From Anaeramoeba ignava BMAN (Eukaryota; Protista; Anaeramoebae): 64,000 bases of DNA. The DNA lies in NCBI GenBank assembly GCA_028826165.1, contig JAPDFW010000073.1:124001-188000 (forward strand), given 5' to 3'. The translations under genes and the position numbers were made by a program. Positions 7,725 through 62,880 of the stretch are shown here, one piece after another. The notes under the pieces were generated by a model that was not told the origin of the DNA, ran no database searches, and saw nothing but the letters and a program-made list of their open reading frames with translations. Within the stretch, counting starts at the first letter, position 1. Every line of letters starts with the position of its first letter.

Positions 7725-7839
7725 TATTTTATTTAAAAAAATCAATCAAAAAAAAAATGAAAAGTTATTTTGAAAGAAAAAAAAATATTTTTTTTTTTGA
7801 TTAAAATGAGAACTTTGAAAAACAACATTAATAATAATA

Positions 7840-12900: not shown

Positions 12901-13535
12901 CCAATAATTTAATAATTTCAATTGAATTTGGATTTAGATTTGAATTTTTGCAAAATAAATGTAAAGGAGTTTCATTATAAATTGTTTTAGAATTAATATC
13001 TACTTCTTGTTGAATAAGAAATTTAATAATTTCAAATGAATTTGTATTTTCATTTTTGCAAATTAAATGTAAAGATGTTTCATTAAGGCAATTTTTTGTA
13101 TTAGGATCAATTCCTTTTTCAACCAATAATTTAATAATTTCAATTGAATTTGTATTTTCATTTTTGCAAATTAAATGTAAATGTGTTTCTTCATCATATG
13201 TTTTGGCATTAATATCTGCTTTTTTTTGAATTAGAAATTGAATAATTTTCAATGAATTTGGGTTTTGACTTTGACATATTAAATGTAAAGGTGTTTCTTT
13301 TTTATTGTTTTTGGCATTAACATCTGCTCCTTTTTCAATTAAAAACTGTATCATTTCAAATAAATTTTGATGTTGATGTTGGTGTTGACAAACTAAATGT
13401 AGAATAGTTTCTTCTTTATGAGTTTGCTATATTTATATCTTTTTCTTTTGAAATTAAAACTTGAAATTTTTCTATTTCAATGTTTTGATTTTGGATAAAG
13501 GAAAATAATTTTTGTTTTTCTTGAATTTTTTTCAT
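9966..13535 (-). CDS. Long ankyrin-repeat array + C-terminal double BTB protein (apparent frameshifts ~13425 and ~12640)
   Basis: More than 20 ankyrin repeats (ETPLHLIC...EIIKFLIQKGANVN), then DLMNLLHSPDNFSDIQI...VHKLILLTR and VHKLVLILRSDLFKGMFLNVQD...DYYQLN. ATG at 13535 (MKKIQEKQKLFSF) preceded by TTTTCAT repeats. Confidence 0.85.
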
Positions 13536-13633: not shown

Positions 13634-13850
13634 ATTAATAATTTAGATTTTAAAAAATTAAACAATTTCCTTTTTTCTTTGTATTTGAATTTTAATTTTA
13701 ATTTCATTAATAATTTAGATTTTAAAAAATAAAACAATTTCCTTTTTTCTTTGTATTTGTATTTGTATTTTGATTTTATTAATAATTTAGATTTTAAAAA
13801 ATTAAACAATTTCCTTTTTTCTTTGTATTTGTATTTGTATTTTGATTATT
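13634..13850 (-). repeat. 72-bp unit x3, each carrying a polybasic-CaaX-stop cassette
   Basis: attaataatttagattttaaaaaat(t/a)aaacaatttccttttttctttgtatttg starts at 13634, 13706 and 13778. The minus strand reads TKKKGNCLIF* / TKKKGNCFIF*. Confidence 0.9.
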
Positions 13851-18600: not shown

Positions 18601-21600
18601 TAAAAATCAAATAATTATTCAAAAAATAGCTTTGAATACAAACTCATTGGTAATTTTAGGAACATTTTTTGAAGAGAAAAACCAAATTAATACTTATTTT
18701 TCATTACAAATGATGAAAGAAATTATCAAAAACAATGATGAAATTATGAAGAAATTTCAAGATTTGATTCCAATACCAAAATTTGTTTCCATCCTTTATG
18801 AATATGACCAAGGAAAACCAACAAAACCAAACATTACAAATTCTATTAGATTTAATGGTTAACAATGAAGAATTTTCCATCAAAACAAATTTTATTATCA
18901 GAAACACAAATATGATTAATATCATTTTGAATCTTTATTCACAAAACTTCCAAAAAGAATTAGATAATTCGCAAAATATTCAACATGATTCTATTAATAA
19001 TAATAATGAAGAAAATGAAAATCAAAGCAACATTTCTTTTCTCGAAATTTTAAAAATATTCAATGAAATTTCTCAAAAATCAATTCATAATATTTGTTGT
19101 TGTTGTGAAGCAGGAATCATTTCTTTCTTACTTGAACTAGTTTCCAAAGTCAAAACAATAGATATCTTCAAAGAAATTATTCAAATTGTTGGAAATTTTG
19201 CAAAATTCAAAACTAATGTTTTCGAAATGAAAAAATACTTTACAATAATGAAAAACCAATTAAATAAAAAATCAAACAAAAATTTTGCCAAATTAATGAT
19301 AAATGAATTAACAAAAATGAAACATCAACCAAATGAACAAAATCCAATAAATTTATTTGATTTTTACGAACAAAACTCAAACATTCAACTTCCACCATTT
19401 AATTCTTCTTTGATTTTTGAAAAATTCACCTTTTGCTGTTGGATCAGAATCGAAGAATTTTCAAGAAGTTTTTTCTCGTCTGATCCAAAAGAAAAGGAAT
19501 ATAAACCAAGAATATTTAGTTTATTATCAGAAAACAACAAAGGAATTGAATTATATTTTGAACTTGATCAGGATCACAAAAACCAATCAAAATCAATTAG
19601 TTATAGAATATATATTGATGATGAAGAAATGATTGAAGCAGTATTTCCTATTCAAATTGAAACAAAGAAATGGTATTTCTTCGTTTTTACACAAAAATAT
19701 GAAGAATCAATCTCAGAAATCGATATTACAATTTACATTAATGGAAAGAAAGAAAAATTCAAAAAACTCCAAATGAAAAAACAATTTGAAACAGAAGAAA
19801 TCCTCACAAAGAATCGAATTGGTTCAAATGTCCCGTTTATAAGAGAAAATAAAGTTCAACAACAAGAAATGCAACAAGTTCTACAACTTCAACAAATAAA
19901 ATTGCTAAAACAAGAAAATGAAATTCTTCAAAAAGAAAATCAGTCTTTAAAACAAGAAAATGAATTTTTAAAAAAGCAAATTCAAATTTTGAATCAAAAA
20001 TTAAAGTCTCAAGAACTAACAAATGAAGATCAAAAAGAGATTCAAGAAAAACCAAAACCTTCAGAATTCTCTTCACAAGAAACAGAGTTTACAAGATGTT
20101 AAATCCAAAAATATAATAAACAAAACATTTCCAAACCAGCAAATACAAGATGTACAAGATTTAAAACAAGAATTGGAAATGCAAGAAATAGATCAATTTG
20201 GAAATGAAAAAATTGATGAAAATGTTATTTTTGGACAAATGGGAGCAATTTATCTTTTTCAAGAAGTTCTTGATGAAACTCAAGTAAAAGCAATTCATTT
20301 TCTTGGTCCAAATTATAAATCTTTTTTTTATTCAGATGAAATATCTCATTATTCTAATTCAATCCTTGGAAATGAATTACAAGAAATATTTAACGGAAAA
20401 TTAACCCAAAAAATTTTAGTTTATCATAATACAAAAGCAATTAAAGAAGATTTTTGTTTAAACGAAAGTCCAGCAAATATTATACCTCAACCATCAAAAA
20501 TAACAAAAATAATTTCATATACTTTAACCAATATTCAGGATATTATTGATTTCCTTGGAGGTATTGAATCATTTATTTATTTGATTTTTGAAATTGATGA
20601 ATTATATAATGAAAATGAATTAAAAAATCAATTAAATAATGAAAATGAATTAGAAAATGAAAATCAATTAAATAATGAAAATCAATTAGAAAATGAAAAT
20701 GAATTAGAAAATAATCAATTAAATAATGAAAATGAAAATTTAGTAAAATCAATTTTTGAAGATATTCTAAGGATTGTTGGAGATTTTTTATTAACTAATT
20801 CTGATTTTCAAGAAAAAATGATTCAAAAAAAAGGATTTCAAATCATTAATATTTTACTTAAAAAAATTCATCCAAATTATTTTTCAAATCAAATCTATTA
20901 TATGATAAAAACATTTACAGAACAAATTCCCAATGAAAAATTTCTATTTAAACTTAAAAAATATTTAATTTTTGATTATAAATTATGGAAGAATTTCAGT
21001 TTTGATATCCAAAATAAATTACTTGAAACAATTGAAATTTGTATTCAAAATCAATTTCTGAACCAAAATCCAACTCAATCTCAAAATGAAGATGAATATG
21101 AAAATGAAGATGAAGATGAAATTCAATCTGAGTATCAATCTGAAAATCAATCTGAAAATCAATCTGAAAATATAAACGAAAATGAAAATCTAAATCAAAA
21201 CCTAAATGAAAACCTAAATGAAAAAGAAGAAAAAAAAGTTTCAAAACCATCAAAAATTAAATTTATTGATTTATTAATTTTGATAGAATTTTATGATAAA
21301 TTTTTATTTAAGACACAAAATCAATTAGAAAATCAATTAGAAAATGAAAATGAAAATCAATTAAAAAATCAATTAGAAAATCAATTAGAAAATCAAAATG
21401 AAAATCAATTAGAAAATCAATTAGAAAATGAAAATGAAAATGAAAATGAAAATCAATTAAAAAATCAATTAAAAAATCAATTAGAAAATCAAATTCTCCA
21501 AATAACTAACAAAATATTTGCAATACTAAACTTTTTTTTAACTAATATACAACTTAAATCTCAAAAAATTATGCTTCATTATTTAATCAAAAGATGCTTT

Positions 21601-24600
21601 CTTTTCAAAACAAATCATTTTATTGAAAAAACTTTTGAATTAATCTATAACTACATTTCAATAAATTCAAATCAAATTTGGAAAGATACATTTTCTAATC
21701 AATTATTATATTCTCCTATTCAATTAATGAAACAAAACAAAAGTACAAAAATGATTGAATTATTTCTTCAAATTATTTCTTCCAGTGATTTTTTTATTTA
21801 TGAAAATATACCACAACCTTCTCAAATATCAGAAATAAGCAAAACCAAAACGAAAAAGAAAATTCATAAATTTAAAGATGCTTATCCTTTAATTCACAAC
21901 ATAATTATTGAAAAAATTGAGATTATTTCTCAAAAAATAATTCAACTTCTTTTCAAAATAATGATTTATGAAAATAGAGCAAATCCATCACAATCACCAG
22001 TAATCCAAAATGGATTCATTTTGCAAACAATTTGCGAAATATTCAAACAAAATCCAAACTTAATCGATTTTGACAATTTCTATAATTTAATCAAAATCAT
22101 TTCGCAAACTAATTTGAATAAACACAAAATTATGTTAGAATTTGGATGGCAAAAATGGATACTTAATTTAATTAATTTAAATTCAAATTCAAATTCAAAT
22201 TCAAATCAAAACCATATTAATGAAATTGGATTCAAAATTTTCAAATTGTTATTTCTTTATTCCTTTTGTGATCCAAATTATAATTTTCCAAAAATATTTG
22301 AAAGATTCCTTGCATCAGTTCATTTGGTTGATCACTTTCTTACAAAAGAAACAAAATATCAAATTATCCAGAAAATAATTAACGATTTAATAATTGATCT
22401 TCTTCAAAATACAGAAATACAATATTTCCGTCAGCAAAAAGATGAAAAAAATTTATCAAAAAAACAAAAAGAACAACAAGAACAAAAAGAACAAAAAGAA
22501 GAATTCAAGATTAAGATATTAAATTTGCCTTCGATTAAAATTGAAAATGAAAGATTCTTCAAAAATTTATTTTATTTAATTTCCATATTAAATATCACTA
22601 TGTTAACTTCATCAAATCAATTCAATTTCCTAAAACCAGAAAAACAACCAACTCAAATTATTCAAACAAAATTATTCAAAAATCTTTCCAAAAAAAAACC
22701 AAAAACACCTAAAGCATTAAGAAAAACAACAAAATTAAAGAAAAATCAGAAAATCAAAAAAAATCAAAAAAATAAGAAAAATCAGAAAAACCAAAAAAAT
22801 CAAAAAAATCAAATACTCAATAATTCAGCTCCTCAAACAAAAATCAAGATGAATCTATTTCAAAACAAAATCATACAAAATCTAATTCTCTTATTAGAAA
22901 AATTTGGGTTTTTCAAACAAAAAGAAATTCTATTCAAAAACAAAGAAAAAAAAAGAACCGTTTTCTCAATTATTACTTTGATGATGCTTTTCTCACTTCC
23001 AAAATCAGATCATCAAATCACTAATTTTTTACTTTCAAAAATTAATGAAATTATGAATCCTGCATTTTATTCCTCAACACTTTCAAACAAAAAATCACAA
23101 GAATTTCTCAAAAATTGTTTCTCTTTTTTGCTTTATTATATTCAAAATGAAAATCAAAATGAAAATCAAAATCTAAATGAAAATCAAAACGAAAGAAAAA
23201 CAAAAAGAAATCTCTTATTAATTAATTTACAAATTTTGATGCAAGATCATTACAATTTCTTGTATAGTTTGTTTTCAAGTTTAAACAAAAAACAAACATT
23301 AGTTTCTAAAAAATATCAAGAATCTTTTATATTTTCATTCAAAGATATTGAAAAAATCGAAAAGGAGATTACGAAACAAGAATGGAAAGAAGCAATAAAT
23401 GATATTTTCCTTTCAGTAAACCAAAAAATTTCCGAAAATACCCAACAAGACGAAAACAATTTCATTCAAATTCAATCAAACAATTTCTTTTTTCTGCAAA
23501 ATGAATTTGAAGAAAAGAAGAACAAAATTGAAAAGAGTTTAATCAACATTGAAAAACAAAAACAAAACCTCATTGAAAAGGAAATCCAAAAAACATTAAA
23601 AACGAAAATTAGCCAAGAAACAAATTTGAAGTATTTACAGAAATTCAAAAAAATGATTGAAAATTCCCTTTTGGGAAAATATCCATGGAGTTCAAATACA
23701 ATGAATATTTTGGATAAGGAATTCGAGAAACACAAATTTTATGCTAAGCTTTTGGAAATTGAAGATGGGATGAGAAGACAAAAGAAATTGAAATTTTATT
23801 CCAAAAAAGAAGAACAAAATGAAAATGATGAAAAAAAAGAAAGCATCAATTTGATACAATTGAAAGAGAATATGAAAAACAAAATAATTGAAATTACAAA
23901 TAAATTGTCACAAAAAAAATGAAAAAGAAAAAGAAAAAGAAATTGAAAAAGAAAAAGAAAAAGAAAAAGAAATTAAAAAACAAAAACAAAAAATAAAACA
24001 AAAGGAAAAGGAAAAGGAACCGAATGAAAATGAGAAGGAAACCCAAACAAAAAACTCATTATCAACAAAATGTGAATTGGTTTCAAAAACAAAAATAATT
24101 AAAGGAATATTTCAAATGACAGAAACTTCAATCAATTTTTTTGATATCAAGAAAAAAGAAAAAGATTATTTATGGAAAATTGAAACGATTCGAACAATTC
24201 ATAAAAGAAGATATAATTTCAAACATTCGTCAATGGAAATATTTTTTCAAAAAAGCAGGAAGTTTGTTTTTTTCAATTTTCCTACAATGGAAACAAGGAA
24301 TGAAGTTTATGAGAAAATCCAAAAACATAAATTCATCAATATCGATCAATCCAAATATAACTATTCAGGAAACGACCCAACAAAATGGATCGAAAAAACC
24401 CAAGTTGTCAAACAATGGCAAGAAGGAAAATTGACAAATTTTGAATATTTGATGTATTTGAACACAATATCGGGGAGAACATACCAAGACGTCTCACAAT
24501 ACCCCATTTTCCCGTGGATTGTGTGCGATTATGGATCTGAGAAACTAGATCTGGAACATCCAGAAACATTCCGCGATTTGTCAAAACCTATTGGAAAATT

Positions 24601-26303
24601 AAACAATAAAATCATGACATATTTCGAGAAGTATCAAAAAAAAGGCAAAGAGAAAGAAATCCAATTTAATTACCACAAATATTATTCAAATCCAGAAATT
24701 GTTTCCTCTTATTTGGTCCGATTGGAGCCATTCACTTCAATTTTCCTGCAAGGAAAGTATGCAATTTTCAAATCAATTCCCGAAACTTGGAAAACAATCA
24801 AAGAATCAAATAACGATTTCATTTTTGGCGAGCTTATTCCCGAATTTTTCCATTTACCCGATTTTCTAAGAAAACCGACCGTATTTAAACAAGAAAACGA
24901 AGCATTCAAACAGATTGCCAATGTTGAACTCCCAAAATGGGCGAAAACACCAGAAGAATTTATCAGGAAGCATAAAGAAGCGCTTGAATCAGAATATGTG
25001 TCACAGCATCTCAACGAATGGATTGATTTGATATTTGGATACAAGCAAAAGGGGGAAGAGGCCAAGAAAGCGTTGAATTTATTTCATCCCAATTTGTATG
25101 AGGAAAATGCCGATTTTTCGGAATTGGAACAGATCAGAAAGGAAATCCAAGCAAAAGGTCAAGTTCCAATCCAATTATTCACCAAAAAGCATCCAAAAAG
25201 ATTATCAAAAAAAGAAATACAGCAAAAATCGTTCCCTTTTTCCTTTTCTCTTTCTCTTTCCTCGTCTGCTGGTTTCCAATGGGGAAACATTTCACTCTCT
25301 GAATCCTTCCATTCAACAAAATTCAAAATTAGCTCAAATCCAATAATATTCATAAATTTCCAAGAAGTTGCAAAAGAAGACGCAACACCAAAATTTCAGC
25401 ATCAAATCACGACAATTGATAAAGAAAGAATCCTGGGAAAGCACGGCTGGGAGTTTCTCAATAAGCCAAACTCCAAAAACAGGTTCTTCAACTTTTATTT
25501 GCACGCAATGACCGAAAAACAAGCCAAAATCGGTGTTTCTTTTTCACAAGATTTCCATAATTTACAGGGAAGTTTCCAAATGGATAAGAATTTGAGATTT
25601 TTGATTTGTTGCGGATTTTGCGATGATACTTTCAAAATATTCGACGCTGAAAATTACAAAATGACTCAAAGCGTCTCAAGACACAAAGATATTGTGAATT
25701 GCTTGGCGATTGATTCCAGATATCTTGTCACTGGCTCAAAAGACACAACTGTAATTGTTTGGGAATTTTCTTTGCGATCAGGAAAAGTGCGACAAGAGCC
25801 CCAAACCGTTTTTTTCGAACATGAAAAAGAAGTCAGAAGTGTCGCCTTATCAGTTGACTACGATATTGTTTTGAGCGGATCTGTTGATGGCAAACTCATT
25901 TTCCATTCCTTAAACAAAGCAAAAGCATGTTCAAACAATCATTCTATCGGATAAACAACCCATTTCGATTATCAAAATAACCAAAGAAGCAAATATCATC
26001 ACATTTTCAGAAAATTCAAAAATCCTGAGGCTGTTTACAATCAATGGTTACTTGATAAAAGAAGAGACTTGTTCTCAGAATATTTATGCAATTTCAATCA
26101 CTCAAGATTCATCCGTTGTCTTTTTAGGTGGAGACAAAGGAATTTTCGAAACTCGCAACTTGTTTGATTTGCAGTTAATTCGTTTTTTTGATTTCAAAGA
26201 AAAAATTTATTCCCTTTCAATTATTGAAAAAGTATTTATAGTTATGATTGGTTTAGGAAATGGACAAATCAAGGTTGGTAATTTTATTGAAAACAAAAAA
26301 TGA
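15689..26303 (+). CDS. Large BEACH-domain protein (neurobeachin/LRBA/Beige-like: ARM-like, ConA/LamG, PH-BEACH-WD40); multi-exon, several apparent frameshifts
   Basis: LamG-like FTFCCWIRIE and GQMGAIYLF; PH (IHKRRYNFKHSSMEIFF); BEACH ([36 protein letters not shown]...ELIPEFF...LNEWIDLIFGYKQKG); WD40 (LVTGSKDTTVIVW). First intron 15845-15934 (GT..AG, phase 0) keeps the frame. Confidence 0.9.
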
Positions 26304-47529: not shown

Positions 47530-47671
47530 TTTTAAATTGAAAAATTTATTAATTCAATTAAATACATTCTTTTGCATTCATTTTATTTTGATTTGTTTTA
47601 AAAAAATGATTTCTAAAAAAATTTTTTTTTCTTTTTCATTTTTATTTTTTTTCTTTCATTTAAAAAATAAA

Positions 47672-49415
47672 ATGAATGCGATAAATGATTTTTGGATTTG
47701 GGGAAAGAAAATTCTTTTAAATGATGTAAATGATTTCTCAACTAATCAAAAATCAACAGAAGCAAATCCAATGCAATTTATACCTCGAGAAAAAAAAGAA
47801 CAAATTAAACAAATTTCATCAACTAAATCGAGAACAATTTTCCTTTACAAAAATGGAAAAGCAATAGGTTATTTAAATGGAACGAACCAATTTTTCAAAG
47901 AAACTAGATTTCCCAAGATAAAAAAAATATCTTTTAGTGATTCACATGAAGGGATTTTAACGGAAGAGAAAATATTTTTTGCAAAAGGAAGAAGATCAAG
48001 AAATTATCATTTATATGATTTTACAAATTTTTCTGAATTCATTGAAGATCCAAATGATAGAATAATTGAAGATATTGTTTCTGGACTGGATGCTATTTAT
48101 TGCTTAACTTCAAATGGAAATGCTTATGGATTTGGTTCTAATTATAGATCCCAACTTGGAATTACTAGAAAAAAACTACCAGAATTAAATCAACCAATTT
48201 TAATGATGAAAAATGTTTCTAAAATTTTTACAGGAGATAATTCAAAATATGTTTTTCTTTTGAATTCAAATCAAGAATTATTTGGATGTGGTGAGAATAA
48301 ATATGGTCAACTTGGATTGGGTTTTGAAAAAGAGTTTATTCCATTGACTCAAAATAAAAAAATTCCAAAAGGCAAAATAATTGATATTAAAACAGGAAAA
48401 GTTCATTCAGTAATGCTAATTCAAGATTATGATCAAAATCAAAATCCAAAAAGAAAACTTTATTCATGTGGGCATTTCCAAGTTAACGGACTTGGGAAAA
48501 AAATAATGCATGCATCCTTATTTACTGAAATCAAATCATCTTTATTTGAAAAAGATAATATTATTGAAATTTCTGTTGGAAACAATCATACTTTGATTTT
48601 AACTTCTAAAGGGAAATTATTAGGATTTGGTGGAAATAACTTGGGTCAATTAGGAAATGAAAATATGAAAAATGTTCCTGTTCCTATTCAAATTGAACTT
48701 CCTAAATTAAGATTTAATGAAGATATTTCTAATTATCATATTTATTGTTCAGGTTTTACTTCCTTTCTTTATTTTTCCTTTAATTCAAGTCTCAATGAAG
48801 ATTTGCTAAAACTATTTCAAAGAAAAGAATTTTGTGATATTTCATTTAAAACAGAAAATGGAGAAATAATCGAAGCTCATAAATTAATATTGAAATATAG
48901 ATTAAATCAAATTGAAAAACTTCAAGAAATTATTTCAAATAAAATCAACAAAAGAATCGAATCAAATATTTGAAATGATTTATTCAGACAATTCCAAAAT
49001 AAATCCAAAATTATATTATGAAATTAAAGAAATTATAAATTCAAATGAAAGAATTGAAGAAACAATGAAAAGAATTTATTTAAATGAAAATGAAAAAGAT
49101 TTTACAATTGAAAGGGCATCAAAATCATTCAATTTTCACAAATTAATATTAATAATGAGAAGTGAATTATATCGAGGAATGTTTTTATCTGTAACAAATG
49201 ATACTTCAAATAAAGTTACAGATTATAGTGAATTAAGTGATGAATCATTTGAAATTTTAGAATATTGGATTTATACAAATAAAATTAAAAAAGGAATTAA
49301 AATTACACAAAAAATACTTGATGAAATTGAAAGAGGAATGGATTATTTTCAATTAAATGAAAGTAAAAACAATATATTATTAATGGTTACTGAACAATTT
49401 AAAAATCAAAATTAA
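47672..49415 (+). CDS. Divergent RCC1-BTB paralogue (frameshift ~48940)
   Basis: ATG at 47672 (MNAINDFWIWG), RCC1 motifs, BTB tail HKLILIMRSELYRGMF. Confidence 0.85.
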
Positions 49416-49459
49416 AAATAAAATCCAAAAATCATTTTTTCATTTTTTTCTTTTCAAAA

Positions 49460-51211
49460 ATGAATGAAATTATATTTTTTGGTCAAAACGAAAAACCAAA
49501 ATTTATTCAAAATGAAACCAATTCAATAACAAATCCAATTCAATTTAAATTTGAAAATGAAAATGAAAAACAAATTAAACAAATTTCAACAAGTTTCTTT
49601 GCAACAATTTTCCTTTTTGAAAATGGAAAAGCAATAGAATATTTAAATGAAGAAAATCTAAGAAAAAATCCTGAAAAAATCCAATTTGAAAATATTCAAA
49701 AAGTAACTGTTGGCTATCAAAATGAAGCTATTTTAACAATAGAAGGAAATGTATTTGCCAAAGGATATTATGTTAATCCAAATAATCCAAATGAATTTAA
49801 CAATATTTCATCATTAATTAAAAATACAAATGATAGAATAATTCAAGATATTGTTTCTGGTTCTAATTCAATTTACTTATTAACTTCAAATCAAAATGCT
49901 TATCAAATTGGTTCAAATAAATCTGGTCAATTTGGTTTAGGTTTTGAATCAGTTCGAAAAGCAGAAAAACCAATTTTAATGATGAAAAATGTTTCTAAAA
50001 TATTTTCAGGAAATTCTTCAGAATCTACTTTTCTTTTAAATTCAAATCAAGAATTATTTGGATGCGGATATAATGGAGATGATCAACTTGGATTAGGGAA
50101 ACTGAAAAAAAAATCAAAAGAGGTGTATATAAGAAAATTAACCAAAATCCAAAATATTCCAAAAGGTAAAATAATTGATATTCAATGTGGATTTTATCAT
50201 TCAATAATGTTGATTGAAAATCCAAAAAGAAAACTTTATTCATGTGGAAATTATCAATATAATGGACTTGGAAAATATCAAGATACAAATGAATTTACTG
50301 AAATCAAATCATCTTTATTTGAAAATGATGATAATATTCTTGATTTTTCTGTTGGAAATTCTCATACTTTAATTTTAACTTCCAATTCAAAATTAATTGG
50401 ATTTGGATATAATTATTATGGTGAATTAGGAAATCAGAATCTAAATTTACAATTAATTCCAATTCAAATTGAACTTCCTAAATTAAGATTTAATGAAGAT
50501 ATTTCTAATTATCATATTTCTTGTGGAGATTACAAATCATTTCTTTATTATTCTCCTCCTCCTTTTTCCAATCTTGAAGAAGATTTGATAAAATTATTTA
50601 GAAGAAAAGAATTTTGTGATATTTCATTTAAAACCGAAAATGGAGAAATAATTGAAGCTCATAAATTAATATTGAAATATGGATTAAATCAAAATGAAAA
50701 TGAAATTGAAAAACTTCAAGAAATTATTTCAAAAAAATCAATTAAAGAAACAAATCAAATATTTGAAATGATTTATTCAAACAGAATAATAAATCCAAAA
50801 TTATATTCAGAAATTAAAGAAATTATAAATTTAAATGAAAAAATAGAAGAAACAATGAAAAGAATTTATTTAAATGAAAATGAAAAAGATTTTATAATTG
50901 AAAGAAAAGAAAAACAATATAAATTTCCTAAATTAATATTAATAATGAGAAGTGAATTATATCGAGGAATGTTTTTATCTGTAACAGAAGATACTTCAAA
51001 TAAAGTTACAGATTATAGTGAATTAAGTAATAAATCATTTCAATTATTTGAATATTGGATTTATTCAAATCAAATTAAAGATGAAATTGAAATTACACAA
51101 GAAATAATTGATGAAATTCAAATTGGAATTGATTATTTTCAATTAAATCAAACAAATCCAAATTTATTTGATTTATTAATTAACAAATTTAATAATCAAA
51201 ATCAAAATTAA
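49460..51211 (+). CDS. RCC1-BTB paralogue (intact)
   Basis: Full-length and collinear with 8164-9912. Confidence 0.9.
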   Translation: MNEIIFFGQNEKPKFIQNETNSITNPIQFKFENENEKQIKQISTSFFATIFLFENGKAIEYLNEENLRKNPEKIQFENIQKVTVGYQNEAILTIEGNVFAKGYYVNPNNPNEFNNISSLIKNTNDRIIQDIVSGSNSIYLLTSNQNAYQIGSNKSGQFGLGFESVRKAEKPILMMKNVSKIFSGNSSESTFLLNSNQELFGCGYNGDDQLGLGKLKKKSKEVYIRKLTKIQNIPKGKIIDIQCGFYHSIMLIENPKRKLYSCGNYQYNGLGKYQDTNEFTEIKSSLFENDDNILDFSVGNSHTLILTSNSKLIGFGYNYYGELGNQNLNLQLIPIQIELPKLRFNEDISNYHISCGDYKSFLYYSPPPFSNLEEDLIKLFRRKEFCDISFKTENGEIIEAHKLILKYGLNQNENEIEKLQEIISKKSIKETNQIFEMIYSNRIINPKLYSEIKEIINLNEKIEETMKRIYLNENEKDFIIERKEKQYKFPKLILIMRSELYRGMFLSVTEDTSNKVTDYSELSNKSFQLFEYWIYSNQIKDEIEITQEIIDEIQIGIDYFQLNQTNPNLFDLLINKFNNQNQN

Positions 51212-51425
51212 AATCAAAATTAAAATTAAAATCAAAATTAAAATTAAAATTAAAATTAAAATTAAAATTAAAATTAAAATTAAAATTAAAATCAAAATTA
51301 AAATTAAAATTAAAATTAAAATTAAAATTAAAATTAAAATTAAAATTAAAATTAAAATTAAAATTAAAATTAAAATTTAAAATTAAAATTAAAATCAAAA
51401 TCAAAATCAAAATTAAAATTAAAAT
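51200..51425. repeat. (aaaatt/aaaatc)n hexamer spacer between tandem RCC1-BTB genes
   Basis: Tandem hexamers; similar tracts follow other copies (53255-53350, 61495-61965). Confidence 0.9.
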
Positions 51426-51460
51426 TCATTTTCATTTTTTTCATTTTTTTCTTTTCAAAA

Positions 51461-53258
51461 ATGAATGAAATTTTATTTTTTGGTTTAAATAAAAATCCAA
51501 TTCTTTTCAAAAATAAACCAAATATAATAACAAAACCAATTCAATTTAAATTTGAAAATGAAAATGAAAATGAAAATGAAAATGAAAATGAAAATGAAAA
51601 TGAAAATGAAAATGAAAAACAAATTAAACAAATTTCATCAGGTTTTTACTCAACAATTTTCCTTTTTAAAAATGGAAAAGCAATAGAATATTTAAGTCAA
51701 AATGATTCAAATCAAAAACCTGAAAAAATCCAAATTGAAGAAAATATTCAAAAAGTAACTGCTGGTTATCTAAATGAAGCTATTTTAACAATAGAAGGAA
51801 ATGTATTTGCCAAAGGAAAAGATATTAATCCAAAACATCCAAATAAATTTATCAATATTTCATCATTAATTAAAGATAAAAATGATAGAATAATTGAAGA
51901 TATTGTTTCTGGATCTAGTTCAATTTACTTATTAACTTCAAATCAAAATGCTTATGGAATTGGTGATAATTATGATTGGCCAACTTGGATTAAATTCTAA
52001 AACACTTGAAAAAACAGAAAAACCAATTTTAATGATGAAAAATGTTTCTAAAATATTTACAGGAAATTCTTCAGAATCTACTTTTCTTTTAAATTCAAAT
52101 CAAGAATTATTTTGTTGCGGAAATAATAATTCAGGTCAACTTGGATTAGGAGAATCAACAGAAGAAACAAAAATCCAAAAATTAACCAAAATCCAAAATA
52201 TTCCAAAAGGTAAAATAATTGATATTCAATCTGGAAGTATTTATTCAATAATGTTGATTGAAAATGAAAATGAAAATCCAAAAAGAAAACTTTATTCATG
52301 TGGATATTATCTATTTAATGGACTTGGAAAAAATAGAAATCGAAATACTTATGAATTTACTGAAATCAAATCATCTTTATTTGAAAATGATGATAATATT
52401 CTTGAAATTTCTGTTGGAATTGTTCATACTTTGATTTTAACTTCTAATTCAAAATTGATTGGATTTGGAGATGATAGATTTTCTGAATTAGGAACTGTAA
52501 ATACAAACGATCAATCAATTCCTATTCAAATTGAACTTCCTAAATTAAGATTTAATGAAAATATTTCCAATTATCATATTTCTTGTGGATTTGAAAAATC
52601 ATTTCTTTATTATTCACCTTTTTCCAATCTTGAAGAAGATTTGATAAAATTATTTCAAAGAAAAGAATTTTGTGATATTTCATTTAAAACCGAAAATGGA
52701 GAAATAATCGAAGCTCATAAATTAATATTGAAATATAGATTAAATCAAAATGAAAATGAAATTGAAAAACTTCAAGAAATTATTTCAAAAAAATCAATTA
52801 AAGAATCAAATCAAATATTTGAAATGATTTATTCAAACAATTCCAAAATAAATCCAAAATTATATTCTGAAATTAAAGAAATTATAAATTTAAATGAAAA
52901 AATTGAAGAAACAATGAAAAGAATTTATTTAAATGAAAATGAAAAAGATTTTATTATTGAAAGAAAAGAAAAACAATATAAATTTCCAAAATTAATATTA
53001 ATAATGAGAAGTGAATTATATCGAGGAATGTTTTTATCTGTAACTGAAGATACTTCAAATAAAGTTACAGATTATAGTGAATTAAGTAATAAATCATTTC
53101 AAATATTTGAATATTGGATTTATTCAAATCAAATTAAAGATGAAATTCAAATTACACAAGAAATCCTTAATGAAATTCAAATTGGAATTGATTATTTTCA
53201 ATTAAATCAAACAAATCCAAATTTATTTGATTTATTAATTAATAAATTTAATAATTAA
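51461..53258 (+). CDS. RCC1-BTB paralogue (frameshift ~51977)
   Basis: GDNYD then +1 shift to GQLGL; otherwise collinear with siblings. Confidence 0.85.
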
Positions 53259-54992
53259 AATCAAAATTAAAATTAAAAATTAAAATTAAAATTAAAATTA
53301 AAATTAAAATTAAAATCAAAATTAAAATTAAAATTAAAATTAAAATTAAAATTCATTTTCATTTTTTTTCATTTTTTTCTTTTCAAAAATGAATGAAATT
53401 ATATTTTTTGGTGCAAATGAATTACCAAAACTTATAAAAAATGAACCAAATCAAATAACAAAAATAATTCAATTTAAATTTGAAAATGAAAATGAAAATG
53501 AAAATGAAAATGAAAATGAAAATGAAAATGAAAATGAAAATGAAAATGATTCAACAATTCTCCTTTTTAAAAATGGAAAAGCAATAGAATATTTAAGTGA
53601 AAATGATTCAAATCAAAATCCTGTTAAAATTCAAATTGAAGAAGATATTCAAAAAGTAACTTTTGGTTGTCGAGATGAAGCTATTTTAACAATAGAAGGA
53701 AATGTATTTGCCAAAGGGATAAATATTAATCCAAAACATCCAAATAAATTTATCAATATTTCATCATTAATTGAAGATAAAAATGATAGAGTAATTGAAG
53801 ATATTGTTTCTGGAGCTCATTCAATTTACTTATTAACTTCAAATCAAAATGCTTATGGAATTGGTTTAAATTATTATGATAAACTTGGTTTTGGTTATGA
53901 AACACTTCATAAAACAGAAAAACCAATTTTAATGATGAAAAATGTTTCTAAAATATTTTCAGGAGATGCTTCAAGATCTGTTTTTCTTTTGAATTCAAAT
54001 CAAGAATTATTTGGATGTGGATTTAATCAATATGGTCAACTTGGATTAGGAAAATCAAGAAGAAAAGAATTCGAAATCAATAAATTAACCAAAATCCAAA
54101 ATATTCCAAAAGGCAAAATAATTGATATTCAATGTGGAAGTTGGAATTCAATAATGTTGATTGAAAATGAAAATGAAAATCCAAAAAGAAAACTTTATTC
54201 AACTGGTCATTATCTATTTAATGGACTTGGAAAAGATGAAGATATTTATGAATTTACTGAAATCAAATCATCTTTATTTGAAAATGATGATGATATTGTT
54301 GATTTTTCTGTTGGAGATTATCATACTTTGATTTTAACTTCAAAATCAAAATTAATTGGATTTGGAAAAAATGAATATGGTCAATTAGGAACTATAGATA
54401 AAAAAGATCAATTTATTCCAATTCAAATTGAATTTCCTAAATTAAGATTTAATGAAGATATTTCCAATTATCGTGTTTCTTGTGAAGAATGCAAATCATT
54501 TCTTTATTATTCTCCTCCTTCTTTTTCCAATCTTGAAGAAGATTTGATAAACTTATTTGAAAGAAAAGAATTTTGTGACATTTCATTTAAAACAGAAAAT
54601 GAAGAAATAATCAAAGCTCATAAATTAATATTGAAATATAGATTAAATCAAAATCAAAATCAAAATCAAATTGAAAAACTTAAAGAAATTATTTCAAAAA
54701 AAACAATTAAAGAATCAAATCAAATATTTGAAATGATTTATTCAAACAATTCCAAAATAAATCCAAAATTATATTCTGAAATTAAAGAAATTATAAATTA
54801 CAATGGTCATTTTTCAGGTTCATTTGCCAGAAAGTTTTTTTTAAAATTTGTATATAGAAAAAATTTTTTTCTTTAATTTTTTTTTTATTGTTTTTTTCTT
54901 TAATTTTTTTTTTATTGTTTTTTTCTTTAATTTTTTTTTTTATTGTTTTTTTCTTTAATTTTTTTTTTATTGTTTTTTTGAAATGAAAAAAA

Positions 54993-57446
54993 TTAAACAA
55001 AAAAAGATTTGATGTTTTTTCCTGTTGAATTTTTTTTTAATAATGAATTCAAGCGATATAAACTGATGGTTTTTTTCTTTGATTGAGAAGCTTTTATGTA
55101 AGAAATTAACAAAAAATATCGTAGTTTGATTACTAAATCTTGGCGAATAATCTGTTCCACTTTCTCTAATTCTACTCCCATTTCAGTTACCATCCAAATA
55201 AAAAAAATGACAAATGGGCCGCATTGAGTGGCACCTATTTGGCGAGGTTGCTTTAAAATAATGGAGAATGTTAATTTAATATTTAGAATTTCTTCACAAA
55301 AATTGCGAATGCGAATTCCAAGCGGATCAGCAATTTGGGCTTTATGACCAAAGCTATTGAAGAAACTGAGAGAGAGTTTTTCAAAATCAAGCACATAGCA
55401 TAAATAGTGATTGGGAGTCCAAAATGGAAGGAAAATTCTTCCTTTTTGTTCTTTTGCTTTTTGGAAAAGAAACAAGATATTTTCTAAATCTCTTTTTTTA
55501 GAAAGCTGCTTTGTAAAATGAGTTAACTCCTTGAGCATTTCATATCTTTCTTTGTCTAAAATAATGTCAAATCCTAATCCGCACATGGATAGGAAATTAA
55601 ATAAGTTTTCATCAAGAAAATTTTTTTTCACAAATTCATTATACGATTGAAATTGAAACAAGATGGTTTGCCGATAACGATTTCTATAACATTCTAAAAA
55701 CCAATTTTTGAAATTTTGATCAATTTGGATCAATTTTTCTTGAATTTCATTTTGATTTTTTCCCAAGCTTCTATAGAAGTTAATTGACGGAAGAAGTAGC
55801 GATCTCAAAAAGTCAATTTCTATAGAACTATAAGATGGACATATTAATTCTAGTAAGTTCTTCATATCAGACATATCGACCCATCCATTAATATCTGTCC
55901 TGTCTTCCCAATCTTCTTCAATTCCTCCGTGAAAAAAACGAAGTTGATTTTGCAGAATTCTCTCTTCCAATACCCTATTTAGGGTATTTTGAATCTCTTG
56001 GCATTCTTGATAGTTTGGATCATTTGGGGCAGTTTCCTTTTGATCATTGATCTCTTCTCCATCTTCAATTTCTTCTTCAATTTCTTGTTCAATCAAATTC
56101 ATTTTTCCTGCTTTTTTCCTTACTCCTGTTTTTTTTTTTGCCTTTTGAGATTTTGATTCCAGTTGAGGATTTTTTCTTTTTTTTTTTTGTTGTTTTTTCG
56201 GTTTCTTTTTTTGCGTTTTTTGCGATAGAGATTTTGCTTTCTCCTTCTCTTGAGATTCTTTTTCCTTTTCTTCTTTTTCTCTCTCTTTTCTTTCCCTTTC
56301 AGCTTTCTTGATTGAATTTCTTTGATGATTTTGTTCTCGCTTCCGATCGACTCTTTCTTGTTCTTTTTTCGTTCTGTTTTGTTTTCGCAATGGATGATCT
56401 GAATATTCTAAATTATAAAGAAATGCACATACTTCCATCACATATCCATGGAAGATCACATCAATTTTAAGAGGAGATTTTGAAATTTTAAAATTTTTTA
56501 GAATTGAAAACACATTTTCGATCACTGATCTATGATGTTGTATTATTTGGTTTTCTTCTTTTTCTTTTTGCGTCAATCCCGTTTGCGTTTCCTTATGAGG
56601 AGTGATTGCGTAATCTCTATGGAACGCTTTATCTCCCAAAACCTTTTTATTCTTGAGAATTGGGATTAGTTTTGAGAACCATACACAATTCGAATCATGA
56701 ATTGATCCTGGAAATCCAGTCTGAAAAAAAATAATTTTGCCTACTGGATCACAAACAACTACAGATTTTATTGTCGAACCTCCTCTTTTAAAAGACCAAT
56801 ATAACTTTTCTTTTTTTCCATGCCTTACTCTTGGATGGTCAGTGCAATCCAGAACGCCTGCACAGTCCAAAATCTTGTCCGTTTCCCATATCTCATTATT
56901 TCTCTTCATCTCATCTTCGTTTGGCCATCTGATTTGGTCTTCAAGTACCGTTCGCAAGATTTCAATCATAAAATGAAGATATCTTGAAACTGTTGTTTTG
57001 GAAATCTTAAAAAAAGCGGCCAAAGCACCAAAAGAAAGGGCATGCTTCAACCAGATTAATGTCATTAATAGAATATGAGGAATGGACAATTTCTTTGTCT
57101 GTTTATTTGGGCTTTTTTTCTCTGATCTTGTTTTTTCATTTTCTTGTTCCACTTTTTTTAAAACCTCCGTAAATGATCCTCTAGATAACCCTGTCAGGTC
57201 TTTTAGTTGTGAATCATCATTTAACAATGAATCCAAAAATGAGATATTATTCTTCTCGTCAACTTCATTTTGTTTTAGTTGTTCTTTCAGAGAAAATTCT
57301 GAGAGTCGCGTAAGTATCCTTTGAATCAGATGATTCCATGTTTCCTTCTCAATTAACATTTTTTCCAATTTTTTGAAAGTCTCTCCATGTACTTTTATTA
57401 GACAATCCTTTTCAATTCTTTTTTGATATGTTTTTTTGTTTGACAT
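54993..57446 (-). CDS. DDE_Tnp_4-type transposase fused to a C-terminal Ulp1/CE-clan (C48-like) cysteine protease
   Basis: HTH region (LTGLSRGSF; LLMTLIWLK...LAAFFKISKTTVSR), D200 (VLDCT), GSIHD, D272 (LGDKAF), E310 (RSVIENVF); basic/acidic linker; protease IFLPFWTPNH680YLCYVLD...FFN697S...RQ736IGATQC742GPFV. Confidence 0.9.
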   Translation of the reverse strand: MSNKKTYQKRIEKDCLIKVHGETFKKLEKMLIEKETWNHLIQRILTRLSEFSLKEQLKQNEVDEKNNISFLDSLLNDDSQLKDLTGLSRGSFTEVLKKVEQENEKTRSEKKSPNKQTKKLSIPHILLMTLIWLKHALSFGALAAFFKISKTTVSRYLHFMIEILRTVLEDQIRWPNEDEMKRNNEIWETDKILDCAGVLDCTDHPRVRHGKKEKLYWSFKRGGSTIKSVVVCDPVGKIIFFQTGFPGSIHDSNCVWFSKLIPILKNKKVLGDKAFHRDYAITPHKETQTGLTQKEKEENQIIQHHRSVIENVFSILKNFKISKSPLKIDVIFHGYVMEVCAFLYNLEYSDHPLRKQNRTKKEQERVDRKREQNHQRNSIKKAERERKEREKEEKEKESQEKEKAKSLSQKTQKKKPKKQQKKKRKNPQLESKSQKAKKKTGVRKKAGKMNLIEQEIEEEIEDGEEINDQKETAPNDPNYQECQEIQNTLNRVLEERILQNQLRFFHGGIEEDWEDRTDINGWVDMSDMKNLLELICPSYSSIEIDFLRSLLLPSINFYRSLGKNQNEIQEKLIQIDQNFKNWFLECYRNRYRQTILFQFQSYNEFVKKNFLDENLFNFLSMCGLGFDIILDKERYEMLKELTHFTKQLSKKRDLENILFLFQKAKEQKGRIFLPFWTPNHYLCYVLDFEKLSLSFFNSFGHKAQIADPLGIRIRNFCEEILNIKLTFSIILKQPRQIGATQCGPFVIFFIWMVTEMGVELEKVEQIIRQDLVIKLRYFLLISYIKASQSKKKTISLYRLNSLLKKNSTGKNIKSFFV

Positions 57447-57567
57447 TTGGTAATAGAAAGAAATTAAAATAGAAAAATTAAAATAGAAAAATTAAAATAG
57501 AAAAATTAAAATAGAAAAATGAAAATCCCAAAATCTAAAAACAAGTTTTTATTTAGACAGGTTTTTA

Positions 57568-59033
57568 CAGTATCCCCCTCTAAATTGGAAAAATCCCAAA
57601 AATAAATCAAAATCAAAATAAATTAAAATCAAAATCAAAATCAAAATCAAAATAAATCAAAATCAAAATCAAAATCAAAATGAATCAAAATCAAAATAAA
57701 TTAAAATCAAAATAAATTAAAATCAAAATCAAAATAAATCAAAATCAATTAAAATCAAAATTAATTAAAATCAAAATTAAAATCAAAATCAAAATCAAAA
57801 TCAAAATCAAAATTAAAATCAAAATAAATTAAAATCAAAATAAATTAAAATCAAAATAAATTAAAATCAAAATAAATCAAAATCAAAATAAATCAAAATC
57901 AAAATCAAAATCAAAATAAATTAAAATTAAAATCAAAATTAAAATCAAAATCAAAATTAAAATTAAAATCAAAATAAATTAAAATCAAAATCAAAATAAA
58001 TTAAAATCAAAATAAATTAAAATCAAAATCAAAATAAATTAAAATCAAAATCAAAATAAATTAAAATCAAAATCAAAATAAATTAAAATTAAAATCAAAA
58101 TCAAAATCAAAATTAAAATCAAAATCAAAATTAAAATCAAAATTAAAATTAAAATCAAAATTAAAATCAAAATCAAAATAAATTAAAATCAAAATAAATT
58201 AAAATCAAAATTAAAATAAATCAAAATAAATTAAAATCAAAATAAATTAAAATCAAAATAAATCAAAATCAAAATAAATTAAAATCAAAATCAAAATAAA
58301 TTAAAATCAAAATTAATTAAAATCAAAATTAAAATTAAAATCAAAATCAAAATCAAAATCAAAATTAAAATCAAAATAAATCAAAATCAAAATAAATCAA
58401 AATTAAAATCAAAATAAATTAAAATCAAAATAAATCAAAATCAAAATAAATTAAAATCAAAATTAAAATCAAAATCAAAATTAAAATCAAAATTAAAATC
58501 AAAATCAAAATAAATCAAAATCAAAATCAAAATCAAAATTAAAATAAATCAAAATAAATTAAAATCAAAATCAAAATCAAAATTAAAATCAAAATCAAAA
58601 TAAATTAAAATCAAAATCAAAATAAATTAAAATTAAAATCAAAATTAAAATCAAAATTAAAATCAAAATCAAAATTAAAATCAAAATCAAAATTAAAATC
58701 AAAATTAAAATCAAAATCAAAATAAATCAAAATCAAAATTAAAATCAAAATAAATTAAAATCAAAATAAATCAAAATCAAAATAAATTAAAATCTAAATT
58801 AAAATCAAAATAAATTAAAATCAAAATAAATTAAAATCAAAATAAATTAAAATCAAAATAAATCAAAATCAAAATCAAAATCAAAATCAAAATAAATCAA
58901 AATCAAAATCAAAATCTAAATCTAAATCAAAATCAAAATCAAAATAAATTAAAATCAAAATCAAAATCAAAACCAATCCAAAATTTTTCCAATTTAAAAA
59001 AATTCAATTTTCAATTCATTTCTGGGAGTACTG
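57568..59033. mobile_element. Nested non-autonomous TA-flanked element (Tc1/mariner/pogo-like ends) filled with an aaaatc/aaaatt satellite
   Basis: TA|CAGTATCCCC...GGGAGTACTG|TA (TA at 57566-67 and 59034-35). A second inverted block TAAATTGGAAAAAT (57581-57594) / ATTTTTCCAATTTA (58983-58996) is a perfect 14-bp match. Confidence 0.6.
57600..58972. repeat. ~1.4-kb satellite of aaaatc/aaaatt/aaataaatt units
   Basis: Direct inspection. Confidence 0.95.
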
Positions 59034-59741
59034 TATGTTTCTTTTTTATTTTTCTTTTTTATTTTTCTTTTTTATTTTTCTTTTTTATTTTTCTTTTTTA
59101 TTTTTCTTTTTTATTTTTCTTTTTTATTTTTCTTTTTTATTTTTCTTTTTTATTTTTCTTTTTTATTTTTTGCCAGTTCAGTTAGTTGCAAAAAGTGTAT
59201 ACACTTTTTCAATTTTCAATTTGAATTTCGGAAATAAAAATTGATCTGAATTCTTCATTTATAGATTTAATTGTTACTAATTGAAGCTGAAAAATGCCCA
59301 ATGAAAAAATAGAAGAAACAATGAAAAGAATTTATTTAAATGAAAATGAAAATGAAAAAGATTTTATAATTGAAAGAAAAGAAAAACAATATAAATTTCC
59401 TAAATTAATATTAATAATGAGAAGTGAATTATATCGAGGAATGTTTTTATCTGTAACAAATGATACTTCAAATAAAGTTACAGATTATAGTGAATTAAGT
59501 AATAAATCATTTCAATTATTTGAATATTGGATTTATTCAAATCAAATTAAAGATGAAATTGAAATTACAAAAGAAATAATTAATGAATTTGAAATTGGAA
59601 TTGATTATTTTCAATTAAATGAAGCATATCCAAATTTATTTGATTTATTAATTATCAAATTTAATAATCAAAATTAAAATCAAAATTAAAATTAAAATTA
59701 AAATTCATTTTTTCATTTTTTTCATTTTTTTCTTTTCAAAA

Positions 59742-61500
59742 ATGAATGAAATTATATTTTTTGGTGCAAATGAATTACCAAAACTTATAAAAAATGAACC
59801 AAATCAAATAACAAAAATAATTCAATTTAAATTTGAAAATGAAAATGAAAATGAAAATGAAAATGAAAATGAAAATGATTCAACAATTCTCCTTTTTAAA
59901 AATGGAAAAGCAATAGAATATTTAAGTGAAAACAATACAAATCAAAATCCTGTTAAAATTCAAATTGAAGAAGATATTCAAAAAGTAACTTTTGGTTGTC
60001 GAGATGAAGCTATTTTAACAATAGAAGGAAATGTATTTGCCAAAGGAGAAAATATTAATCCAAAACATCCAAATAAATTTATCAATATTTCATCATTAAT
60101 TGAAGATACAAATGATAGAATAATTGAAGATATTGTTTCTGGAGCTCATTCAGTTTACTTATTAACTTCAAATCAAAATGCTTATGGAATTGGTTTAAAT
60201 TATTATGATAAACTTGGTTTTGGTTATGAAACACTTCATAAAACAGAAAAACCAATTTTAATGATGAAAAATGTTTCTAAAATATTTTCAGGAGATGCTT
60301 CAAGATCTGTTTTTCTTTTGAATTCAAATCAAGAATTATTTGGATGTGGATTTAATCAATATGGTCAACTTGGATTAGGAAAATCAAGAAGAAAAGAATT
60401 CGAAATCAATAAATTAACCAAAATCCAAAATATTCCAAAAGGTAAAATAATTGATATTCAATGTGGAAGGTGGAATTCAATAATGTTGATTGAAAATGAA
60501 AATGAAAATCCAAAAAGAAAACTTTATTCAACTGGTCATTTTCTATATAATGGACTTGGCAAAAATGAAGATATTTATGAATTTACTGAAATCAAATCAT
60601 CTTTATTTGAAAATGATGATGATATTGTTGATTTTTCTGTTGGAGATTATCATACTTTGATTTTAACTTCAAAATCAAAATTAATTGGATTTGGAAAAAA
60701 TGAAGTAGGTCAATTAGGAACTATAGATAAAAAAGATCAATTTATTCCAATTCAAATTGAATTTCCTAAATTAAGATTTAATGAAGATATTTCCAATTAT
60801 CGTGTTTCTTGTGAAGAATACAAATCATTTCTTTATTATTCTCCTCCTCCTTTTTCCAATCTTGAAGAAGATTTGATAAACTTATTTGAAAGAAAAGAAT
60901 TTTGTGATATTTCATTTAAAACCGAAAATGGAGAAATAATTGAAGCTCATAAATTAATATTAAAATATAGATTAAATCAAAATCAAAATCAAATTGAAAA
61001 ACTTAAAGAAATTATTTCAAAAAAAACAATTAAAGAATCAAATCAAATATTTGAAATGATTTATTCAAACAGAATAATAAATCCAAAATTATATTCTGAA
61101 ATTAAAGAAATTATAAATTCAAATGAAAAAATAGAAGAAACAATGAAAAGAATTTATTTAAATGAAAATGAAAATGAAAAAGATTTTATAATTGAAAGAA
61201 AAGAAAAACAATATAAATTTCCTAAAATTAATATTAATAATGAGAAGTGAATTATATCGAGGAATGTTTTTATCTGTAACTGAAGATACTTCTAATAAAG
61301 TTACAGATTATAGTGAATTAAGTAATAAATCATTTCAAATATTTGAATATTGGATTTATTCAAATCAAATTAAAGATGAAATTGAAATTACAGAAGAAAT
61401 AATTGATGAATTTGAAATTGGAATTGATTATTTTCAATTAAATGAAGCATATCCAAATTTATTTGATTTATTAATTAACAAATTTAATAATCAAAATTAA
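59742..61500 (+). CDS. RCC1-BTB paralogue, recent duplicate of the 53389 copy (frameshift in an A-run ~61225)
   Basis: Shares MNEIIFFGANELPKL, the first-blade deletion and the NEAYPNL tail with the 53389 copy. Confidence 0.85.
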
Positions 61501-62301: not shown

Positions 62302-62880
62302 TCAAAGAATAAAGCAGAGTTTCTTTTTGCGCGGACCCAACGGCAAACCGTCATTAGATTTAGGGTCTTTACCGCCGTTATACTTACGAATTTGCCTTAC
62401 ACATTGAAAAAAGGCCTCCTCAACATTTTCTCTAGTTTTAGCAGAAGTTTCAATATAAGCGCATTGGAACAATTTTGCCAAATCCTTGAGTTCATCAAGA
62501 GAAACTTGGCGGTTTTTAGTAAGATCTTTTTTATTGCCGACAATAACCATTGGAAAATGGTCAGCCTCTTTAGTCTTAAGAATATTGTCTTTATATAAAG
62601 TAACTTCATCAAAAGAGCTGCGCATATTGATTGCATATACAATTACAAATCCATCCCCGCTTCTCACGTATGTGTCTCGCATAAGCGCATATTCTTCTTG
62701 TCCTGCTGTGTCAATTATTTCTAACATACTCACTTGCCCGTCAATTTCTACTTGTTTTTGATAGAAATCTTCTATCGTTGGTTCGTATTCTTCTATGAAT
62801 TGTGAGTGGATTAATTGTACCGTTAGTGCGGATTTTCCTACTCCTCCTCCTCCTACAACTACTATTTTATAACTCGGCAT
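62302..62880 (-). CDS. Ras-family small GTPase
   Basis: GGGGVGKS, YEPTIED, DTAGQEEY, NKKD, ETSAK, polybasic tail + CaaX (RKKKLCFIL); intronless. Confidence 0.95.
   Translation of the reverse strand: MPSYKIVVVGGGGVGKSALTVQLIHSQFIEEYEPTIEDFYQKQVEIDGQVSMLEIIDTAGQEEYALMRDTYVRSGDGFVIVYAINMRSSFDEVTLYKDNILKTKEADHFPMVIVGNKKDLTKNRQVSLDELKDLAKLFQCAYIETSAKTRENVEEAFFQCVRQIRKYNGGKDPKSNDGLPLGPRKKKLCFIL

Follow-up and report, generated by a model that had tools for sequence, protein, structure and literature searches.

Why would a cut-and-paste transposon carry a protease fused to its transposase? The question is raised by an element in a 64,000-nt stretch of the genome of Anaeramoeba ignava BMAN (assembly GCA_028826165.1, contig JAPDFW010000073.1, positions 124,001 to 188,000; hereafter, the window), in which a single open reading frame (ORF), P0001, codes for a transposase followed by a CE-clan protease-like domain. 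A. ignava is a free-living anaerobic metamonad, and its assembly was built from Nanopore reads and polished with Illumina reads (PMC11550330). An initial annotation had described the element as a complete Harbinger/PIF-type transposon whose transposase is fused in frame to a Ulp1-like protease, forming a new single-ORF lineage. The fusion was found again in two further families of this genome, and the window element appears to be best explained as an autonomous cut-and-paste transposon of the IS5/PHIS group.

The element is complete and spans positions 54805–59299 (4495 bp). Its terminal inverted repeats (TIRs), both starting with GG, occupy 54805–54825 (+, the 3′ end of the element) and 59279–59299 (−, the 5′ end) and agree at 18 of 21 positions; 0.005 such matches are expected by chance in the window. 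A target-site duplication (TSD), AAT, flanks the element on both sides (54802–54804 and 59300–59302, +). When the element and one AAT are removed, the 5′ part (53389–54804, +, 472 codons) and the 3′ part (59303–59677, +) of an interrupted host RCC1-BTB gene rejoin into an open frame of 596 codons, which is collinear with the next tandem paralog (96–98 % identity). The paralog thus provides the empty site that fixes the TSD, and the near identity of the rejoined frame to it suggests that the insertion is recent. The single ORF (54993–57446, −; 817 aa) is intact. No second protein-like frame of at least 90 codons exists in the element, the others being of low complexity, and neither a Myb/SANT nor a YqaJ ORF was found there. 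In all these respects the initial description of the element holds.

The domains of P0001, all on the minus strand, follow one another without interruption of the frame. The helix-turn-helix (HTH) DNA-binding domain HTH_Tnp_4 (aa 118–168, E = 6e-11; 56943–57095) precedes the catalytic domain DDE_Tnp_4 (aa 199–345, E = 2e-26, Pfam PF13359; 56412–56852), with the predicted triad D200/D272/E310, whose residues are invariant columns in an alignment with seven prokaryote-type sequences, among them bacterial IS5 transposases. The charged linker (aa 352–500; 55947–56393) consists to 70 % of K, R, E, D, Q and N, with 32 lysines, and contains basic clusters that could form a nuclear localisation signal. 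It leads to the C-terminal domain (aa 505–817; 54996–55934), where a long helical stretch precedes the catalytic core (aa 668–770; 55137–55445).

A full HMMER search with aa 500–817 over 1.84 billion cluster representatives returned three other proteins, all from A. ignava, and no copy of the protease outside a transposon, all four matches lying in TIR elements. Likewise, no relatives of the protease were found in searches of viral contigs, metagenomes, phages or plasmids. Across four lineages of the domain (19–25 % identity), only 17 of 297 columns are invariant, and these include, with a chance of about 7e-6, the four residues that had been proposed as catalytic: H680 (55407–9), N697 (55356–8), Q736 (55239–41) and C742 (55221–3). 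Their spacing is also fixed in all four lineages, with Asn at His+17 and Cys at Gln+6. The order His, Asp/Asn/Glu, oxyanion Gln and Cys, set on a CE fold, is that of the CE clan, and the H/N/Q/C of P0002, one of the three relatives, align with the H/D/Q/C of SENP2.

Searches of PDB and Pfam with aa 520–817 as a single sequence gave nothing significant. The 14 best PDB matches of the family profile, in contrast, were all CE-clan proteases of ubiquitin or ubiquitin-like modifiers (Ub/Ubl), with E-values of 2e-4 for ChlaDUB1, 5e-4 for SENP2, 1e-3 for SnCE1 and 0.04 for Ulp1. Against a Pfam gathering threshold of 20.7 for Peptidase_C48, P0002 scored 24.5, P0004 14.0 and P0001 13.5, while P0003 gave no match; the only Pfam matches of the domain in P0001, weak and obtained with the trimmed core, are to two CE-clan families, C48 and C57. 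The AlphaFold model of the protease contains three strands, a helix, a strand and the Cys helix, as expected for a CE fold, and Foldseek related it to SENP2, SnCE1, Ulp1, OtDUB, I7L and NEDP1 (prob 0.9–1.0, E 0.01–0.1), the first four ranking highest with prob about 1 and E about 0.01, as well as to viral Ulp-like proteins. Although each of these lines is modest, together they make a convincing case, from profiles and models, that the C-terminal domain of P0001 adopts the CE-clan fold, as initially predicted. The family departs from typical members in its Asn as third catalytic residue and in the long helical stretch before the core. W522 could possibly correspond to the Trp at which a CE fold begins, in which case the domain would contain a helical insertion of ca. 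90 aa, but this equation found no confirmation. At third codon positions, the GC content (GC3) of the protease part (0.27) is close to that of the transposase part (0.28) and differs from that of the host gene (0.07). Since the protease matches the transposase and not the host gene, it would be long-time transposon cargo rather than a fresh capture, and this transposon-like codon composition led us to reject a recent capture from the host.

The same fusion occurs in two further families of A. ignava. P0002, in the element of locus L002, is an intact 913-aa ORF with the domain order of P0001; its element measures 3026 bp, with TIRs matching at 16 of 17 positions and an ATT duplication. A third family is represented by two copies (L004 and L005; 4083 and 4067 bp, with AAT and ATT duplications, respectively), whose ends are P0004 and P0005; for these proteins UniProt reports a profile of ubiquitin-like proteases. 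Both copies are frameshifted, by indels of 1–2 bp that fall mostly in homopolymers, and from the transposase onwards, wherever one copy is broken the other stays open; in L004 no stop interrupts the frame between the DDE domain and the N-terminus of the protease, the linker included. These frameshifts are likely Nanopore errors. In our searches, the frameshifted copies L003, L004 and L005, and likewise the spliced database models, were used as separate pieces. In the third family, Asn/Glu/Gln hexamer repeats lengthen the linker to ca. 330 aa (L004, ca. 6130–7160; L005, ca. 6790–7780), which resemble the low-complexity runs of the host itself. The three transposases are 40–47 % identical to each other and, in a tree, are set apart from the prokaryotic sequences by a branch with full support. 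A layout conserved in three families at this level of identity indicates that the fusion is old and maintained, and not an accident of assembly; an assembly chimera was accordingly rejected. The in-frame fusion and the single-ORF lineage of the initial annotation are both borne out by these families, each having its own TIRs and AAT or ATT duplications.

The fourth lineage of the protease, P0003, lies on a different type of element (L003, 5068–10145; 5078 bp), which ends in AG..CT, has perfect TIRs of 27 bp and is flanked by a TTAA duplication. There, the protease follows an unrelated transposase, in whose open frames one reads DPWH, then a cluster of His and Cys residues and, with the terminal Glu, an NESF segment; a Cys-rich motif is also present at the N-terminus. 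Searches with this transposase gave weak ISL3 matches only. Kolobok transposons are marked by a TTAA duplication, 5′-RR..YY-3′ ends, a C/DxxH motif and varied accessory genes (PMC9587614). The duplication and ends of L003 agree with this description, as do its DPWH motif, His/Cys cluster and terminal Glu segment with the marks given for Kolobok in the same paper, and by its motifs and termini the element is classed here as Kolobok-type. Five overlapping open frames run from its transposase into the protease, which would fit a frameshifted transposase-protease fusion, a point that a single copy cannot prove. The occurrence of one protease family on two superfamilies points to its transfer between them, as TET/JBP genes move between fungal transposon superfamilies (PMC12730594). 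The elements of L002 and L003 sit in copies of one AT-rich intergenic repeat, at sites that differ by a few bases; of the ca. 90 bp compared (L002 7800–7841 and 10868–10920 against L003 5030–5067 and 10146–10200), 87 of 90 positions are identical. Because both insertions are in copies of the same repeat, each serves as the empty site of the other, backing the TTAA of L003, and the repeat is a possible insertion hot spot.

To which group does the fused transposase belong? P0001 also matches PF01609 (E = 1e-8), and its best prokaryotic profile is that of IS5 family NF033581 (45 bits, E = 8e-12, against a cut-off of 140 bits), so that it is related to this family, of the ISL2 type, without being a member. 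tblastn retrieved cyanobacterial and other IS5-family transposases with 24–29 % identity across most of the query. The core signature of the PHIS superfamily, D(19-29)K(29)D(18-40)D(11-19)P(18-28)R(3)E (PMC4122938), is recognized in P0001 as D200(19)K220(30)D251(20)D272(10)P283(22)R306(3)E310, with two spacings off by one. The ends conform to the broad PHIS/IS5-like pattern of short TIRs, mostly beginning with G, and short AT-rich duplications: in all three families the elements start with GG and have short TIRs and AAT/ATT duplications. The duplications, scored at four insertions (AAT, ATT, AAT and ATT, two of them backed by empty sites), are AWT and not the TWA of strict PIF/Harbinger elements. 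Moreover, the Myb/SANT ORF of the latter is absent from the window element, and the L002 element has just 159 and 125 bp outside its ORF. The Harbinger/PIF label of the initial annotation therefore survives only in the broad sense of an IS5/PHIS-type transposase, and strict PIF/Harbinger membership was rejected for lack of TWA and of the Myb ORF. Membership in ISL2EU was also rejected, since these elements show 3-bp duplications instead of a 2-bp AT duplication at A|AT|T, and Pfam revealed neither a THAP domain nor a YqaJ ORF. P0002 and P0007 are named "thap domain protein" at NCBI, with no detectable THAP domain in them; the name was probably transferred from ISL2EU-type matches. The AWT duplications at the four insertions do agree with the ANT of Pangu/Harbinger2, but the layout of this group, with two ORFs and a transposase devoid of other domains, differs from the one ORF with HTH_Tnp_4 and protease found here.

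Altogether, the element may represent a new PHIS lineage, with the limit that the references in our tree are prokaryotic only and the eukaryotic groups were compared by description; a protist group, ISL2PR, is named in PMC10045372. Since the transposase is collinear with single-ORF enzymes of bacterial IS5/ISL2 type, the missing Myb ORF may be ancestral and not a loss. The structural model of the transposase gave generic DDE matches only, and no relatives appeared in searches of viral contigs, metagenomes or prokaryotic genomes. Searches with a word index found the query itself and one bacterial-type transposase only, although their blanks are weak because they missed P0002 too. An N-terminal segment (aa 8–50; 57297–57425, −) is present in all three families (L002, 8001–8160; L005, 5650–5805) and matches DUF7557 weakly (E = 4e-4 for P0002). 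Its strand-helix-helix pattern is suggestive of a ribbon-helix-helix DNA-binding domain, a reading for which PDB and AlphaFold searches gave no support.

As to function, we favour, with some confidence, the view of the C-terminal domain as an active Ub/Ubl isopeptidase that works near the transpososome, shielding the transposase or clearing tags from chromatin or repair proteins. By analogy with the family, the HTH domain, perhaps with the small N-terminal domain, would bind the TIRs, and the DDE core would cut out the element and join it, with a stagger of 3 nt, to an AWT target. The long, flexible and lysine-rich linker would tether the isopeptidase, specific for ubiquitin, SUMO or NEDD8, to the transpososome, where it might relieve the transposase of its tags and so save it from degradation, or untag chromatin and repair proteins at donor and target sites. 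The protease would then serve the transposons of this host as an accessory module of counter-defence, exchanged between superfamilies. Several observations weigh against this proposal. The domain of P0001 itself falls below the Peptidase_C48 cut-off (13.5 against 20.7), its structural model is of modest confidence (pLDDT 51, with the core mostly 55–74) and the Foldseek E-values obtained with it are non-significant taken alone. The residue after the catalytic His is Tyr, Phe, Tyr and Tyr in the four lineages, whereas a Trp at this position is highly conserved in CE proteases and missing in YopJ acetyltransferases (PMC4961225). No SUMO consensus site is common to P0001 and P0002, and both the target of the protease and its benefit to transposition are inferred only. 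Additionally, enzymes of this one fold act on ubiquitin, SUMO or NEDD8 or transfer acetyl groups (PMC4961225), so that a deSUMOylase and a deubiquitinase cannot be told apart from the sequence.

Alternatively, the protease could act diffusely as a genome-wide anti-silencing factor, removing SUMO or ubiquitin from the heterochromatin machinery, with the fusion serving only for co-expression and nuclear import. The portability of the module between unrelated transposases suggests that no specific partner is needed, and SUMO is reported to be required in animals for silencing of transposons guided by Piwi-interacting RNAs. However, a SUMO-dependent silencing pathway is not known from Anaeramoeba, the in-frame fusion has been retained in three long-diverged families and, for the Kolobok-type element as well, the pattern of open frames gives a hint of fusion, so we regard diffuse action as unlikely. 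Even less should be expected of an acyltransferase, of the YopJ/AvrA type or as a side activity like that of ChlaDUB1, or of an enzyme for some other non-Ubl substrate: the His-Tyr/Phe in place of His-Trp is a trait of the acetyltransferase branch (PMC4961225) and the long extra helical region ahead of the core points the same way, but no YopJ-family structure was among the profile or Foldseek matches listed and the third residue, Asn, aligns with the Asp of SENP2.

Could the domain be neutral cargo, a captured fragment of a host Ulp of no use for transposition? Related bacterial IS5/ISL2 elements do transpose with a transposase alone, yet four lineages with about 22 % identity have kept the catalytic residues unchanged, no host copy outside transposons was found among the 1.84 billion cluster representatives and the codon composition is that of a transposon, which together make this quite improbable. 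The prospect of a maturation protease cutting its own fusion protein, as CE enzymes do in the processing of adenoviral and poxviral polyproteins, is fainter still. A di-glycine at the start of the protease in P0001 (G507–G508) and weak matches to Peptidase_C57 and to viral CE folds speak for it, but the best profile matches are Ub/Ubl proteases and not viral maturation enzymes; P0002 lacks any GG or AG, and the other two relatives have no GG at the aligned place. Self-cleavage at a conserved di-glycine was thus rejected, and the self-processing that the initial annotation had envisaged finds no support. Returning to the tethered isopeptidase, a wider scenario can be drawn, which we hold only tentatively: an uncatalogued eukaryotic PHIS lineage, perhaps from a separate entry of a bacterial IS5/ISL2 element into metamonads, would have become viable in the nucleus by means of a transposon-specific CE-clan isopeptidase, a module traded with Kolobok because it defeats host defences based on ubiquitin or SUMO.

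Outside the ORF, the window element contains a T-rich tandem repeat of 27 bp in its 3′ untranslated part (54864–54979) and, in its 5′ region, a hexamer microsatellite of ca. 245 units (57604–58976) that fills 1.37 of the 1.85 kb lying upstream of the ORF. The microsatellite shows complete strand bias (no G) and resembles runs between host genes; the sister families are without it. The TIR at the 3′ end runs into a subterminal motif, CATTTGCCAG (54821–54833), which the elements of L002, L004 and L005 also have, so that all three families show it equally far from their 3′ ends, although reduced to a TTGCC core in L002 and with TIRs that themselves differ among the families; an additional TTGCCAG lies at about 59170. 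The TIRs of the window element had no match in viral contigs, and no Rfam family was found. The interrupted gene is part of a tandem array of RCC1-repeat/BTB genes (47606–61500, with others at 8164–9912 and 13794–15080), several of which are split by apparent frameshifts (e.g., 51461–53258 and 59742–61500) that are possibly assembly errors. Ordinary host genes surround it: ankyrin-repeat-like ORFs, identified by eye, a BEACH/WD40 gene and a Ras-family GTPase (9966–13354, 20023–25954 and 62302–62880).

Proteases of ubiquitin and SUMO recur on unrelated eukaryotic transposons, with a proposed role in transposition (PMC2836005). With the elements described here, the IS5/PHIS group and Kolobok join this pattern, and a single genome, that of a deep-branching metamonad, has the same protease family on two superfamilies; the divergent active site, with Asn and no Trp, would represent a new branch of the CE clan. 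Where the ORF is intact, the elements are compact (3.0 kb for that of L002), with one intron-free frame and defined ends, so that a comparison of the wild type with a mutant of the catalytic Cys would be a clean test of the role of the protease and of the modifier that it removes. As for the novelty initially claimed, the idea of a protease on a transposon is known, whereas its combination with an IS5/PHIS transposase, and the protease family, appear to be new. In the open literature, we came across neither a PHIS nor a Kolobok element that carries a CE-clan protease, Repbase and subscription journals being beyond the search, and the accessory genes listed for Kolobok (KolX, nucleases and RecQ; PMC9587614) do not include such a protease.

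Close known systems include Ginger1 transposases with an in-frame C-terminal Ulp1 (Peptidase_C48) or OTU domain and Mutator/MuDR elements with Ulp1 (Bao et al., 2010; PMC2836005), which share with P0001 a DDE transposase, an in-frame C-terminal CE-clan Ulp1-like domain and the same proposed role in transposition. Here, however, the transposase is of IS5/PHIS type and not integrase- or Mutator-like, and the protease is highly divergent, with Asn third, no Trp after His and relatives found only in A. ignava. From another metamonad, Trichomonas vaginalis, protein XP_001314237.1 combines a pfam01609 transposase with peptidase C19, as cited in PMC2836005 from a paper on IS5-like elements. This reported fusion would be a near precedent in function, from a related host. 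It resembles P0001 in host group, in the fusion of a ubiquitin hydrolase to a transposase and in the PF01609 match, and differs in that its protease is a papain-like USP/C19 instead of a CE-clan enzyme.

Cryptons, Helitrons and other elements carry Ulp1, OTU, UCH or VTD domains (PMC3212892, PMC11417382, PMC9741609), and the VTDs of Helitrons are deubiquitinases of another fold, active in vitro and not shown to act in transposition (PMC9741609). Like the A. ignava elements, they show that mobile DNA repeatedly carries Ub/Ubl proteases, for which shuffling between groups has been suggested, but they use other mobility enzymes and, mostly, other protease folds. Pangu/Harbinger2 elements (PMC4482050) share the 3-bp ANT duplication and short TIRs starting with GG, although they usually have two ORFs and a transposase without other recognised domains, instead of one ORF with HTH and protease. 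Bacterial IS5 elements of the ISL2 type (NF033581; e.g., ISMae4 and an insertion sequence from a cyanobacterial plasmid) likewise have a single ORF, in which HTH_Tnp_4 and DDE_Tnp_4 are collinear with P0001 over ca. 280 aa, with D, S, K, K, G, D, D, P, N, R, E and K invariant, and the ANT duplication of IS5 (PMC4482050) is also seen in A. ignava. Identity is only 18–27 %, however, and the A. ignava transposases form a long separate branch, on elements of ca. 3–4.5 kb, compared with ca. 1.1–1.2 kb in bacteria, and have an N-terminal segment, a linker and a protease in addition.

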